Shown here: positions 18,675 through 51,256 of the stretch, piece after piece
Layout of the letters: every line of letters starts with the position of its first letter
Numbering within the stretch: position 1 is the first letter of the stretch
Assembly: GCA_013239625.1 (NCBI GenBank)
Contig: MU057344.1
Span: 9,026,727-9,090,726 of the forward strand
DNA length: 64,000 nt
Reading direction: 5' to 3'
Source: Lama guanicoe
Taxonomy: Eukaryota
Notes under the pieces: model-generated
Told to the model about the DNA's origin: nothing
Database searches by the model: none
What the model saw: only the letters and a program-made list of their open reading frames with translations
Translations under genes and position numbers: made by a program

Positions 18675-18822
18675 NNNNNNNNNNNNNNNNNNNNNNNNNN
18701 NNNNNNNNNNNNNNNNNNNNNNNNNNNNNNNNNNNNNNNNNNNNNNNNNNNNNNNNNNNNNNNNNNNNNNNNNNNNNNNNNNNNNNNNNNNNNNNNNNNN
18801 NNNNNNNNNNNNNNNNNNNNNN
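18675..18822 (+). other. PRDM2: 148-N gap, inferred to hide PRDM2 exon 4 (about 104 nt, VWATKPILKGKKFGPF...YMWE)
   Basis: I found no exon-4 sequence elsewhere between exons 3 and 5. Exon 3 ends in phase 1 and exon 5 starts in phase 0, so an intervening exon is required. The gap is large enough to hold it. Confidence 0.8.
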
Positions 18823-35519: not shown

Positions 35520-36900
35520 TGTGCAGTGCTGAGGGCGAGGCAGCGGACCCCCGTGGGCCGAGCAGGCTGGCGGCGGTGCAGACGGTGCCCTGCCGGGCGC
35601 TCGCGTCCTCCGCGCCACCTCTTCCGTGGGCACGTCCGTGGTGTAACGAGCCGTGCGTTTACAAACGTGCGGTGACATGCAGTTCTTACCATGCTTAACT
35701 CGCTCTCGGACTCTGAAACCTGCGCTGACAATTAGCTTTCGGCACGTCTCTTTCCAAAGTGCCTGGCTCCTTTCGGTTATGCTTTATATTTCCCTTCAGC
35801 TTAGATTTCGTGGGCAAAATGGTTCCATAGTTTATTTTTCCTTGTGCGTGGATAGTCGTGAGGCTTTGAACGGTGAGATCCCGTGGCATATGTCAGGTTT
35901 GAGTGTAAAGCGATTCTGTCAGATGCCGACGTCCACCGGACGGACTCCGTGGAGCCGAGACGGCCAGGAAGTGAGGTCCTCCTTCCAGCAGAGGGTCCCT
36001 TCCCGCGCCGCCCAGGCCGCGGCTGCCGCGCTGGAGGAGCCCTTCCTGCCGGGCTGGCCTCCGGCGCGCCGCCCCGCTGGGAGCGCCGNNNNNNNNNNNN
36101 NNNNNNNNNNNNNNNNNNNNNNNNNNNNNNNNNNNNNNNNNNNNNNNNNNNNNNNNNNNNNNNNNNNNNNNNNNNNNNNNNNNNNNNNNNNNNNNNNNNN
36201 NNNNNNNNNNNNNNNNNNNNNNNNNNNNNNNNNNNNNNNNNNNNNNNNNNNNNNNNNNNNNNNNNNNNNNNNNNNNGGAAAGGTAGGAGCCCGCCGCCGC
36301 CCCGGCTCCCTGCCGCCGCCCGGCCCGGGCCGGATCCGGGCCCCGGCGGCGCCCGCGGCCCTCGGTGACCTTTCCCGGACACGGCGCCGGCCCGCGGTGC
36401 CAGCCCCCCCGGCCGCTGCTGAATCACGGCGCCGGACGCCGCGCTCGGGCTCTTTGCTAACTTGGGGCGGAGCAGCCGGGCGCGGAAAAGTGAGCGGAGC
36501 GGCGCGCCGCGAGGGCGGCCGGGCCGGCTGTCACCTCCCTCGCCGCCGTCTCCATAGCTGGACTTGCGGGCGGGAGCGGCTGCCGGTCTCTCGGAGCCCG
36601 GCACGCCGGTATATTCTTAGCTTTTTGTGCTGTTCGCCAGCGACGCGTCGTAAAATGTGTTTCGAGAGTGACATTTCCAGGTCCGAGGAGTCGGTGGCCT
36701 GTGTCCACCCAGACTGTGCGGGAGGGCTGGGCGCGCTGCGGGGCCGGAGAGCCGGCCGGGCCGGACACTGCTCCGCGGCCACCCACTCGTCCCGGGCCGG
36801 GCCTGCCACTCCGGCCACCGGGCCCGGCCGCCCGCCGCGCCACCCCACGCGAGGCCGCGCTGCGCACCATCGCTTTACTCGCGATGGGTGAAGGTTTTAG
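35520..36900. promoter_or_regulatory. PRDM2: Intragenic CpG island over the intron 5/exon 6/intron 6 junction; expected internal promoter of the PR-less RIZ2 isoform
   Basis: Very GC- and CpG-rich relative to the AT-rich flanks, with a GC box GGGGCGGAG near 36464. RIZ2 is known to start from an internal promoter around intron 5/exon 6. Confidence 0.88.
36156..36282 (+). CDS. PRDM2: PRDM2 exon 6: only the last 6 nt (GGAAAG) are visible; the rest lies in the 36089-36276 N gap, and the start is inferred from a 127-nt exon length
   Basis: GGAAAG|GTAGGA immediately after the gap fits ...S-R-K-G with a phase-1 donor, matching the exon 7 phase. Confidence 0.8.
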
Positions 36901-45900: not shown

Positions 45901-48074
45901 TTGAGGTGTAGAGTAAACCTCTCTGGTTCTGTTGGCTGTATTTTTTTTTAATCTGTGAGATTTTCAGAACCTGTTTCTCTGCAGTAAAGTGACTACTGGC
46001 TTGAAGCAGAAAGTCTTAGGTCTCTGTGAGGAGTGGGAGCATACTGCCCACCGCCTCCTCCCTTGGTCCCCTCTCCATAAACGTGTTGATGCCAGCATCA
46101 ATGGAAAGCAAGTCTCATGTTCATGTCTACTGGGTTCATGCTGCAGGCAGCAAGCATGGTGCTGGTTAGTTGTAGTTTTGATCTATGTCTGTTTACACAT
46201 AATGTATTGTAACATTTGTACTATTAACACTGGAGTTGAAATTAAAGTTTCCCTCTCACTGTCATCCAAAACAAGTAATAGAAAGGAGTAGCTATCAGTA
46301 GCCTCAATTTTGGCTGGATTTTTGAACAGGGGCTTTAAGATTCCAGATTTGCTTGTTTTTAAAAGTTTTATTAGCTGCTCAGTGTATTATCCAGAAAGTA
46401 TCTTTGATCATAGAAGTATTTGATAACAAGATCAAATTTGACTGTTAAGCATAATATCTATTTGTGGTTTTGATTCCATCAAAATTATAAATTCAGGCAT
46501 TCAGGCTGGAAAATAATGTAAATTACTGTCTGTATGCCAAAGCAAATTAAATTCATGGTGATCCTTAACTAACACTGTTTCTGATCCTCTTCAGTTTTAG
46601 AGAGGCAGGGTTCTCTAAATCTCACAATTGATTGTCAGAAAGTACATGGAACTGGTAAACTTTGTTTTCACAGAAAATGATTGTTATGCTCCCCCCAACT
46701 TCAGTTTCTCTGTTAAAGCTCATTAAGTATATTTACTCAGGCTTCACTGTTGCTTCTGTATTAAATACAACTGGATCAGTATTTTGTAAATAGATAACTT
46801 GCTTAAAACGAGCCTGATGTGAGTGTACGTTGGATGGAGGAGAGAAGGGAAAAATTGTTGGCCCAGTTATACCTTTGAGTGCTGGGAGATGTACAGGATG
46901 TGGACTTCATTGTGGCGTGCTGGAACTTAGCCTTGGAATTACAAGGCCAGGTTCAAACCCCAGCTCTACCAGTTAACAGTAGTGTGACTTTGGAGGGGTT
47001 ACTCTACATATATTGATCTTTGGTTTACTTGTCTGTAAAATGGGATAAGACCTACCTTGTAGGGTTACCATGAGCATTAAGTGAGAGCCTCATAGGAGCG
47101 GGTGTGGCATACCAACCTGGGTCTGTTGTAATTGGTGATTGCTGGCAAAATCAGCTGTGTGGTAATAACTCTGCCTGTTCTTGACTTATTGTGGCACTTC
47201 TGGATTAAAAAAAAAATGAACAGCTTCAGCATCTTCTAACGTGTTTTTTGAAGATCCTTATGTTTTGCTTTGGTGACATGGAGTGAATTAAGTAGATTGC
47301 AAATTAGGTGAGACAGCAGAGCTTTGGATCTGCAACTAGATACACATCAGGACACTAGAGGATTCCTCTGGTGTCGGGCATCTGCTTCTCTCTTAAAAGC
47401 TGTCTTGTTTCACTAGTTACGCAAACTAGGACACCTGTGGTTACACAGGTTGGTGGCTTGGATAACTCTTGGAGTCTGATGTGTTGCACGGGCAGAAGTA
47501 AATGTGTTTCACTGCTTGCTGCCCAAATGAAGGGTTTACTGTTTTCTTCCTGCTGTGTGTCTTAGGTTTATGTGGTCCAAACCACTCATAACTGTACTTG
47601 GTTATAACAAAATTTTATGCAGGTGACATTTTGGATGAAATTTGAATACATTTTCTTGGATATTATCAGACGGCCTTGAAGGTAACTGTGTGGGAGCTAT
47701 TTCAGTGCTGTATATGACAGATTAGGAAATCTGGATATGAAATCAGGGAAAAACAAAAGTTTGAAAGAGCTATTTTCTTAGGAGAAGTGACTGATTAAGT
47801 TGATGATATGTTTTATTTATTATGCACAATTATATATTGTACATCATTAAGTGTCCTGATTATCTGTGCAACATGTTTATCACGCAGTCTGAGGCACTGG
47901 GGCTTTCTTTTCAGGATCACGCAGGAGTACTGTCTGCGCATATTCACGTGAACTAGCAGCTTGACTGTATGGCATCACAGGTGGTCTCAGCCCCAGAAGT
48001 TGTGTTTATGGCTGTTCATGACTGTCTGGGGAGAGGAGCCTTAGGTGTTAGCTGATTTTCAAAGGGGTCTAAGG

Positions 48075-48105
<31 letters not shown>

Positions 48106-48253
48106 TTTTAAATCCCATTCTCTGCCCGCTACAGACCCAGAGGTTCTGCTGCAAATGGTCTGGGGCACATCCTGGGCCCCAGCATTTTTCTGGATGTTCT
48201 CCCAGGCAAGTCTACTTTACATGTTTTTCTCAGTGAACACGTTAGCCTTGAAA

Positions 48254-48604
48254 CATAGATGTGCAGGCTGTACTCCCAGGTGTGGGTGATGCGGGAATTC
48301 CACAGATTAACGTGGGCTCGGTAGGGCCCTGCGTCCTCCCAGGTCAGGCCGCTGATCTGCAGGGAGCGGCCTGGCCCCACCACACTCAAACGACCCCAGT
48401 ATGGCGTTTCCGCTTGGTAAAAGGCATCTGGCCCTCCAGCTTCTACCAGGGTTATCGTGGCTATAGCCCTGGGGACCGAACGACACATCCAGAGGATGCT
48501 CTCCACCTGCTGTTCATCCTGCAGCTGCAGGGGCAGAATGACAGACCCCCCTAGGGTCCCAGTTACCACCACGGGGGCTGAGTCCTCTCCGGAAGCCCCT
48601 GGTC
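48254..48604 (-). CDS. Uninterrupted SLAM-family IgV exon (351 nt, phase 1-1): GPGASGEDSAPVVVTGTLGGSVILPLQ...ESILW...YWGRLSVVGPGRSLQISGLTWEDAGPYRAHVNL...EYSLHIY; coding function unproven
   Basis: Resembles human LY9 domain 1 (ASGKDSAPTVVSGILGGSVTLPL...YLGRL...SLCISNLTLNDAGSYKAQIN...FTLFVY). Has the C-strand Trp and D-x-G-x-Y motif and lacks the B/F-strand cysteines, as SLAM V domains do. Preceded by acceptor cttctgttctgtgtctgcAG. No in-frame ATG or leader upstream. Confidence 0.85.
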
Positions 48605-48682
48605 CTGCAGACACAGAACAGAAGCTTCAGAAGCAGCTTATTACGTCGGAGGCTCACAGCAGGCCTGAGAGTCAGGGCAGTG

Positions 48683-48768
48683 ATTATTATTCCTATTTTG
48701 CAGGAGAGAAAACAGAGACCCACGGAATTTAGTTGCCTTGCTCAAGACCACACAGCTAGTTCATGATA
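48683..48768. mobile_element. MIR fragment carried inside the SLAM-like retro-insertion (parental intron sequence)
   Basis: attattattcctattttgcaggagagaaaacagagac...ttgctcaagaccacacagctagt is the MIR core and lies inside the TSD boundaries. Confidence 0.65.
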
Positions 48769-51256
48769 GACTAAGGTTTCTTCTTGAAGAGATTAGGAAC
48801 CACTAAAGGGAACTAGTATGCTTAATTTAAAAAATTAAGCAGAGGGTGTTTGTTAGAAGCAATAAAATAAGTGGGATATGGACTTTAAAAAAATGAGGTG
48901 TGCTCACAATTTCTGCTATTAGAGCATTTATACATACTGATAGGGATGTCAGCGAGTGTTTGATGTAATTCTTCTCTCAGTGAAACGTCTGCCCCACTGG
49001 ACTTGTATGTTTCCGTAATGATACCTGGGTGGGATTGTGTGAATCGTTGTAGAACAAATGAGCAAAACAAATGGATGGATTCGGGTTTGTTAGTAGAAGC
49101 AGAATGTCATTGTCTTCATAAGAGGGAACATATGCTGACAATTTGGACTTACAGGCATGGGGTTTCTGTAATTTGTTCAGTAGGATCCACTGTGGATACT
49201 CCTTACAGTTGATTCCATTTATTGAGTCTGTGTCAGGCACTGTGCAGAGTTCGTTCTTTACGCACATTATCTCCGGTTCTCCTCCCAAGGACAGTATCGG
49301 GCAGTTTTCACCGGGATGTGTCGTAGTCACTTCCCCTCTGCCCTGAACAGCATTACTTCTCATTATTCAAGTCATAGTCCATGGCTGCGCAACTCAGTCT
49401 GAGTTTTGTGTGTGTCCGTTTTGAGGGCTTCTGTCCCCGAGGCCCCGTTTTATTCACAGTGCCGCCTCAGCACCGGAGGAGGGGAGTAGGGAGAGCCCAG
49501 TCCCGAGCCTCACTTTAGTTGAGGTCAGCTCTTTGCAGGGAAGATGTGTGACCTTGGGGACACAGAACCCTTTTGGGGGCAGGTGAAATGAGTAGCTGGA
49601 ATGAGACTGAGACCCCTTTCCCAGCGTGGACCTGGCCTGGGAGACAGCTGTGTTTCAGATCCCCCCTGTGTGAGCCCCTCCTCCTGGGCTTCCTGGTTGG
49701 CGGGGAGCATTATTTTACCCTTGTGTTGGCAAAAGAGAGAAGCGTCAGCTCAGGACCCTGTGGGATGATCCTTGGAGACCAGCACTGTGCAAGATTTAGT
49801 ATCTCTAAAAGGCTGTGATCTCAGTGCGAGAGCCCCTTGGCTGTGCTCCTACAAGAGCCGTAGCTTGTAGCAGGGCCAGCCGTCCCCTGAGCCTCCCAGC
49901 TTCGCCTGGCTGGAGGGCTGTTTACATCCCCCTCGCCACCCCTCTCAACCCGCCACCCTGCCTCCCGCAAATCCATCTCTCTGTCTCTGTCCCTCCAGCT
50001 CTCTCCCCATCTCCCTGTCCTTCCCTCTTCCCTCCTGCCTGATTTCCTCCCTCCTGCATTCCCTTCTTTTTATTTTTAATGAAATACAGATTTTTCTGGA
50101 ACATTTTTCCATTCAGAATTTGCTTTTTGTCACTAATAGGGCCTTTCTGCAAACGGGCTTGCTTTTCACAGAGTTAGACGTATAATTTCCGTTTTACATT
50201 CCTTTGGGCCAGACTCTTTGTCGTAATATATATGTATTCCCTGTAGCTCTTAGCAAAATGCCTTGTAGTTAGTAAGCACCCAAGAAGAATTATCTAACTA
50301 CTTCTGCTTCACTGTTATTCCAGAAACTTTACAAAGCAATGTAGAGGAAGAATTAATCTAGCAAGAATAATGAGCCTGGGCCAAATGTGAACAGTAGTCT
50401 GATGTAGGCTAGTACATCTGAGAATGAGATGAGCTATTAAATAGGCTAGTAGGATTTTGTACTTAGGTGGAGAACTGAGAAAAAAATTTGAAATTGAATT
50501 TAAATGTAATTTGTGATTTACAAAAATAACTACCTTATGAAGAGAACACATTTTAGATCTTTCTCTGCTTCTTGAATCTGAAAGACAGCCTCGGCAGTTT
50601 TGAGTTTGTCAGGGGGTGAATTTTGTGCTGGCCTGTGTGCACGCGCAAGCCCTGGAGAACTCCAGGCTCTTTTCTGATGGAGCAGAGACACATCTGAACG
50701 TGCAAAAGCAGCTGGAAGACAGTGGAGGGCTTAAACAAGAGGGCATGAGCTCATTTAGCAACAGCAATGAGAGTCTTAATAAGTATACTGGAATCAAAGG
50801 GTCTCATTCCATGGTAGGTCCCAGTGATTAGGTAGTTTAGTTACCTGTAAGTTCTTTAATTTTTGTGAATAAATTTCTTAAACCTCTACCAAAATGTGTC
50901 ATATTCAAGTGCCATGGCCTCATTTTTACATTTTAGGAGAGGCAAAATAAAAGCTAGTGAACAAGACTCTGACTACCAAAACACTGACCCTCAGCTTATA
51001 CCTGCGAGGCACTCAGCGTGATTGTTTAAATTAGATTTTTGATTTACATAATTATGGGTATGGTAACCAAGTGCATTGAAACAAGAGGAAGAATAGGAGA
51101 CATGTGGCTGTTCCAAAGGAGAAAAAAAAATCAATTTTTTGTTTGCAATAATGTGATCACAGGAAAAAGCTGAAGGATATACACCAAAAGGCTCACAGCG
51201 GTAATTTGAAGGCTTAAGCAGTTTGGGCTGTTTAAATAATGTCTTGTTTTTGAATA

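Follow-up and report, generated by a model that had tools for sequence, protein, structure and literature searches.

A probable LINE-1-type retropseudogene fragment carrying a complete SLAM-family V-domain exon in a camelid genome

Retrocopies that are only partially processed and truncated at their 5' end form an established class (PMC5470649, Casola and Betran 2017; there Soares 1985, Baertsch 2008, and Zhang 2014), recognizable by target site duplications (TSDs), a 3' A tail, 5' truncation, the loss of one intron together with the retention of another, and the lack of a promoter. Genes of the SLAM family have also been captured by herpesviruses, a process for which mediation by long interspersed element 1 (LINE-1 or L1) was proposed (PMC5199112). 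Here, we describe an insert in the genome of Lama guanicoe, found on contig MU057344.1 within a stretch of 64,000 nucleotides (the window), that carries on its minus strand, between positions 48084 and 48770, one complete immunoglobulin variable (IgV) exon derived from a SLAM-family gene.

All the features listed above for partially processed retrocopies are present in this insert. It differs from them in being a single-exon fragment, with one immunoglobulin (Ig) domain rather than most of a coding sequence, and in the exon skipping that it records, with a junction to a terminal-exon-like piece absent from current camelid gene models. With the herpesvirus captures, it shares a SLAM-family RNA as the starting material and a retrotranscription route, whereas it was integrated into the genome of its host and amounts to a non-coding fragment instead of an expressed viral gene. 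We consider the insert likely to be a retropseudogene fragment of young age, partially processed and truncated at its 5' end, that was generated in a camelid by LINE-1-type target-primed reverse transcription.

The template would have been an RNA of the camelid four-Ig paralogue annotated as "Ly-9-like" or "SLAMF9-like," with intron 1 retained or with an RNA start located inside intron 1. In this RNA, exon 2, which encodes the first IgV domain, would have been spliced to a terminal-exon-like acceptor, skipping the C2-V-C2 exons. Reverse transcription, with L1 as the putative enzyme, presumably used a TCTT/GA nick for priming on the A tail, and cDNA synthesis would have ended 166 nt into intron 1, which is the 5' truncation. 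The resulting fragment would have been inserted antisense to a transcription unit of the + strand.

Anatomy of the insert and its target site

The sequence CTAAGGTTTCTTCTT is present twice, at 48069 to 48083 and at 48771 to 48785, as a direct repeat identical at 15 of 15 positions; by our own estimate, the chance expectation for such a pair is ca. 0.002 in the 1.9 kb searched. The 687 nt enclosed by these TSDs (48084 to 48770) were read on the minus strand. Following the TSD copy at the 5' side (48771 to 48785) come 166 nt of intron-like sequence (48605 to 48770), putatively the 3' end of the parent's intron 1, with a pyrimidine tract and a CAG acceptor (CAG at 48605 to 48607), ending in TTCTGTTCTGTGTCTGCAG right before the exon. 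The IgV exon itself (domain 1, exon 2 of the parent) occupies 48254 to 48604; it is 351 nt long, of phase 1-1, and open. It is followed by a 3' piece of 144 nt (48110 to 48253), by a run of 13 A's that represents the remnant of a poly(A) tail (A13, 48097 to 48109), and by a (GAA)4G microsatellite (48084 to 48096), both of them read directly from the sequence, before the second TSD copy (48069 to 48083) closes the insert at its 3' side. The microsatellite is most simply derived from the tail or from the TSD. The first-pass annotation had reported the TSDs, the length of the insert, the A13 tail, and the open phase 1-1 exon, all of which were borne out base for base by direct reading. No further copies of the insert were found within the window.

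On the + strand, the TSD copy at 48771 to 48785 is followed by GAAGAG, which places the nick at TCTT/GA and gives TTTCTTCTT/GAAGAG as the pre-insertion sequence. The nick site consists of four pyrimidines followed by two purines, and four of its six bases match the L1 endonuclease consensus TTTT/AA. The insert itself provides neither a promoter nor a start codon, and it likewise lacks a signal peptide and a donor site. The open reading frame (ORF) listed by the ORF track (48129 to 48614) starts at a GTG within the acceptor, and the signal peptide of the parent resides in exon 1, which is absent from the insert, in agreement with the earlier description of a fragment with neither ATG nor signal peptide. 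That description had also called the module splice-ready, which holds for the acceptor but not for the donor, as the exon's own donor is gone. With regard to a MIR fragment proposed in the intron-like part, an nhmmer comparison within the window (47380 to 47415 masked) gave a single weak match (E of 0.11).

The encoded V domain and its parent gene

The exon (48254 to 48604, minus strand) contains 116 full codons without a stop. A PDB sequence search with its peptide retrieved CD84/SLAMF5 (E of 5.7e-12) and NTB-A/SLAMF6 (E of 6e-7), and the Pfam V-set score was 17.6 bits, below the cut-off of 26. An AlphaFold2 model, for which a family alignment of 28 sequences was used as input, is a nine-strand sandwich with a mean predicted local distance difference test (pLDDT) value of 82 and a predicted template modeling score (pTM) of 0.73. 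The best Foldseek matches of this model were CD84 and NTB-A, ranked above TIGIT, the nectins, and CD2, so that CD84 is the best PDB match of the peptide both by sequence and by fold (template modeling [TM] scores of 0.73 to 0.79). V domains of the CD2/SLAM type usually lack the canonical disulfide between strands B and F. The exon peptide has a single cysteine (residue 40) and none at the canonical B and F positions, and a V-set fold without this disulfide is common to CD84 (2PKD), NTB-A (2IF7), true LY9 (CD229), and the insert peptide. The sequence matches to CD84 and SLAMF6, the matches of the predicted fold, and the missing disulfide confirm the earlier assignment of the predicted peptide to the SLAM/CD2-family V domains. 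However, identity to true LY9 and to the solved SLAM V domains was only 32 to 36%, indicating a different member of the family.

This member was found by scanning 1.8 billion representatives in full with HMMER, after which the group retrieved was searched at 90% clustering and re-scored against the window peptide. The scan led to a group of proteins named inconsistently as "SLAM family member 9-like" or "T-lymphocyte surface antigen Ly-9-like." Relative to the window peptide, these proteins were 97 to 98% identical in camelids, 82 to 85% in cetaceans, 76 to 80% in ruminants and pig, ca. 70% in carnivores, and 62 to 72% in afrotheres, rodents, and tarsier, values that assign the window to a camelid genome. 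At 114 of its 116 residues (98.3%), the exon peptide is identical to domain 1 of the Camelus and Vicugna proteins (P0162, P0163, P0214, and P0216), products of the camelid Ly-9-like/SLAMF9-like gene (e.g., XP_045373094.1 of C. bactrianus, XP_031291809.1 of C. dromedarius, and XP_031545050.1 of Vicugna pacos), the exon boundaries and phase of which equal those of the insert. The parent protein has ca. 450 amino acids and consists of a signal peptide, a V-C2-V-C2 array, and a short, highly conserved terminal exon starting with ASFLPCSLRKEF. In comparison with this gene, the insert is devoid of exon 1 with the signal peptide, of the C2-V-C2 exons, and of the true terminal exon, and it encodes W at position 101, where the proteins of both camelid tribes have R. 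Orthologous parents were found in Camelus and Vicugna, and that of the dromedary is located on the same scaffold as true LY9.

True LY9/CD229 was also considered as the parent and rejected, since domain 1 of camel LY9 (P0013) is only 36% identical to the insert peptide versus 98% for the Ly-9-like/SLAMF9-like paralogue. The first-pass annotation had found the peptide most like LY9/CD229 domain 1, a statement that coincides with one of the NCBI labels, but the parent is a different gene.

The four-Ig paralogue (proteins P0150 to P0223, with a ASFLPCSLRKEFLLFLILGALQIE-like terminal exon) was present in xenarthrans, afrotheres, several rodents, carnivores, artiodactyls, cetaceans, camelids, and tarsier, under the inconsistent NCBI labels SLAMF9-like, SLAMF5-like, Ly-9-like, and Ly-9. 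No members from anthropoid primates or Mus appeared in the protein searches around the window peptide, and nothing relevant was found in the literature on "SLAMF10." The paralogue may be an unnamed tenth SLAM gene that has been lost in humans.

The proposed RNA template and the origin of the 3' piece

When the insert was aligned with the mature camelid proteins, identity started at the split glycine codon of the exon 1/exon 2 junction and ended with the lone G that forms the last base of exon 2. Upstream of the exon, an intact acceptor takes the place of the parent's signal-peptide exon. In a relative, a genomic read-through ORF (P0210) starts at the same GTG within the acceptor and shares the last 10 nt of the acceptor with the insert, reading MS-V-GPG versus MS-A-GPG in the insert. 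At the other end, the genomic DNA of relatives continues past exon 2 as G/GT GAG (the slash marks the end of the exon), translated as Y-G-E, in seven sources, of which five are independent read-through ORFs of other mammals (P0210 to P0213 and P0200) and two are camel gene models with intron 2 retained (P0192 and P0181). In its read-through form, the parental intron 2 reads GECLGDGD in both camel models and GE followed by C, F, or Y in the five genomic ORFs; by our reading of the alignment, the intron retained in P0192 is apparently only ca. 126 nt long.

In the insert, the exon is instead followed by G/TT TCA AGG. Since no parental intron 2 sequence is present and homology does not extend beyond the final exon base, intron 2 has been removed exactly at its donor. 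The splice junction at the 3' end of the exon is thus seen at the protein level, the level at which the comparison was made. The L1-type, RNA-mediated insertion of an incompletely spliced SLAM-family RNA, proposed at first pass, is upheld by the TSDs, the tail, the degenerate pyrimidine-purine nick, the acceptor kept upstream, and the limits of homology at the exon edges.

The 3' piece (48110 to 48253, minus strand) begins in the phase of the exon with ten codons that read VSRLTCSLRK, while the terminal exon of the family begins with ASFLPCSLRK, a match of seven residues out of ten. The core of this terminal exon, C[S/C]L[R/K]K, was present in 28 of the proteins retrieved, with sloth, elephant, camel, and alpaca among the species represented. 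In the six-frame translation of the 64 kb, a match of seven or more residues to the start of the terminal exon occurred in only one of 127,942 windows of ten residues, exactly at the junction. The 144 nt had been taken as unrelated sequence, which is incorrect in view of the in-phase match at the exact end of the exon. Beyond the lysine, the 3' piece diverges from the terminal exon, and both camelid tribes carry the standard exon ASFLPCSLRKEFLLFLILGAWHIE. The 3' piece is accordingly a diverged homologue of the terminal exon, which may be an unannotated pseudo-exon or belong to a paralogue, and it differs from the exon that current models use.

The V exon and the 3' piece were each searched on their own rather than as a joined model. 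Among 11 camelid cluster proteins, there were four other C-terminal exons, and none had the tail of the insert (0/11). A search with the 161-amino-acid ORF revealed no camelid V-only isoform of 89 to 282 amino acids, and tblastn of all fetched proteins against the parts of the insert outside the exon yielded only noise, such as the six residues GSLFSL in an N-terminal extension of a cetacean protein (E of 0.89). Read-through into intron 2 was rejected as a source of the 144 nt, since the parental intron reads GECLGDGD, unlike the 3' piece.

In squirrel, a RefSeq isoform (P0194, Sciurus carolinensis isoform X2) has the V-domain exon, ending in LLVY, joined directly to the terminal exon ASLLACSLKKEF, with the C2 exon skipped. 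In-phase exon skipping, with a junction of the kind seen in the insert, is thus annotated in the four-Ig family.

Age, alternative explanations, and genomic context

The insert peptide differs from its camelid relatives at few positions. At V-domain position 62, the three Camelus species have S and both alpaca and the insert have Y; at position 101, the three Camelus species and alpaca have R and the insert has W; and at position 114, the three Camelus species and the insert have H and alpaca has R. Y62 and H114 are also the residues of cetaceans and other outgroups. By parsimony, the insert would have kept the ancestral camelid sequence of the exon except for R101W, its one private change, and the remaining difference from the parent in its own tribe would have arisen in that parent after copying, whichever tribe this is. 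Codon 101 of the insert is TGG, so that a parental CGG would make R101W a CpG transition.

At a neutral divergence of 2 to 4%, between 4.9 and 9.8 nonsynonymous changes would be expected in the exon, and one was seen (Poisson P of ca. 0.04 to 0.0006). The copy probably arose after Old and New World camelids had separated, provided that this separation corresponds to 2 to 4% divergence, a figure that we assumed. Perfect TSDs and a pure A13 run are consistent with a young age. Under a model weighted for transitions and CpG sites, 4.1% of the substitutions in the exon create a stop, and the probability that the frame is still open at 0.5 to 1% divergence was 0.57 to 0.75, with the share of indels assumed. 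The intact frame is uninformative with regard to function, because an open frame is expected at such a low divergence, and it would reflect youth rather than selection. The only private change in the exon is nonsynonymous.

Several observations weigh against the retropseudogene reading. The assignment of the 166 nt to intron 1 is based on the anatomy of the acceptor and on the ten shared nucleotides, and the nick site TCTT/GA is degenerate. The 3' piece is far more diverged from the true camelid terminal exon (7 of 10 residues, different thereafter) than the V exon is from its parent (114 of 116). Neither AATAAA nor ATTAAA was found in 48110 to 48253 (minus strand) before the A13 run, so no signal is present 10 to 30 nt upstream of it; A13 may be partly templated by an A-rich source site rather than being a true poly(A) tail. 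In addition, sequencing runs that are RNA or putatively RNA (X15 to X19; organism F, "reproductive system metagenome") contain 26 to 30% of the sampled words of 47600 to 49250, a share that could mean transcription. For comparison, the V exon and the 144-nt piece together make up 30% of this region. The words in these runs could come from parental mRNA, from host pre-mRNA, or from the DNA of a diverged relative. As a separate observation, a TTTAAA upstream of A13 is the sole candidate for a polyadenylation signal and overlaps the tail itself.

Other origins of the insert were also considered. A sense L1, or another intronic promoter, in intron 1 could have initiated a transcript through exon 2 that was spliced to a downstream terminal exon and copied in cis by L1 proteins, with the L1 part lost through 5' truncation (an orphan 3' transduction or L1-initiated read-through). 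Such an origin would account for the retention of intron 1 together with normal donor use and for the mobilization of so odd an RNA, and it would leave the same end product with TSDs and a tail. Nevertheless, we find it unlikely, as no L1 sequence is present within the insert and retained first introns are common, without any L1, in RNAs that are otherwise spliced. The divergence of the 3' piece, much greater than that of the V exon, could also be taken to mean that the two come from different loci, i.e., that a tailed 144-nt piece and a piece of SLAM pre-mRNA were joined from separate RNAs by template switching during target-primed reverse transcription. However, the junction lies between the last base of the exon and the first base of the terminal-exon homologue and keeps the phase, as splicing predicts. 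Splicing is favored over a template switch because the junction connects an exon end to an exon start in matching phase, and the chimera appears highly improbable. Duplication at the DNA level or an assembly artifact has hardly any chance of being correct in view of the tail, the TSDs, and the spliced-out intron 2. The top 31-mer shares in DNA runs (see below) also seem too high for a sequence in which all junction words were absent, although this is weak evidence.

A different question is whether the insert has any function, either because the exon is used via its native acceptor in a transcript of the minus strand or because a V-domain peptide is under selection. The open frame, the intact acceptor, the intact predicted fold, and the presence of part of 47600 to 49250 in RNA runs all fit a functional element. 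Still, this is very unlikely, considering that the fragment lacks an ATG, a signal peptide, and a donor where the exon ends, that an open frame is expected by chance, that a non-conservative R-to-W replacement of the CpG-decay type is among the very few changes, and that the RNA words are equally explained by parental mRNA or host pre-mRNA. A bolder possibility, to which we give little credence, is that the insert derives from a regular but unannotated V-only SLAM isoform (secreted and decoy-like) with no counterpart in human or mouse, or that its acceptor is used by a minus-strand transcript of the host intron. In the latter case, a ligand-binding Ig module would have been tried out in a new transcript, an early stage of exon shuffling. 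Returning to the retropseudogene reading, the fragment is most likely inert, dead on arrival rather than a new gene.

The surroundings of the insert were also analyzed. All eight 8-kb bins of the window contain more T than A (skew of 0.05 to 0.12), and in seven of them, G is more frequent than C. An excess of T over A together with G over C is a signature of the non-template strand in transcribed mammalian regions, which indicates long-term transcription of the window with the + strand as the probable sense strand. As this signature is found on the + strand, the insert would be antisense to a transcription unit of that strand. The first-pass annotation had placed the insert antisense in intron 6 of PRDM2; of this placement, the skews uphold only that the insert runs antisense to a transcription unit of the + strand.

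Fourteen DNA runs, which carry five organism labels and come from at least eight studies, contain 83 to 96% of the sampled 31-mers of 47600 to 49250. They lend weak support to the assembly and to the sharing of the insert among close relatives, since the run with the highest share may be the source sample and words of the insert may be parental. Metagenome scans gave no match for the V exon in host-derived metagenome contigs. Two stretches of the window are masked with N's, at 18675 to 18822 (148 nt) and 36089 to 36276 (188 nt). The region that contains the second stretch (36 to 40 kb) has the highest CpG content of the window (CpG observed/expected ratio of 0.76) and resembles a CpG-island promoter.

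With no sign of an effect on the host gene or of an encoded product, the wider importance of the insert would be small. Its value lies in being a clean and datable case in which L1 machinery would have copied a half-processed RNA of an immune receptor. The insert also appears to preserve a splice form of a little-known four-Ig SLAM paralogue, joining exon 2 to a terminal-exon-like piece, that goes beyond current annotation, as well as the putative ancestral camelid residues of the first V domain of this paralogue. Its presence or absence could be scored as a marker among camelids, and the fragment could also point the way to isoforms of the parent gene.

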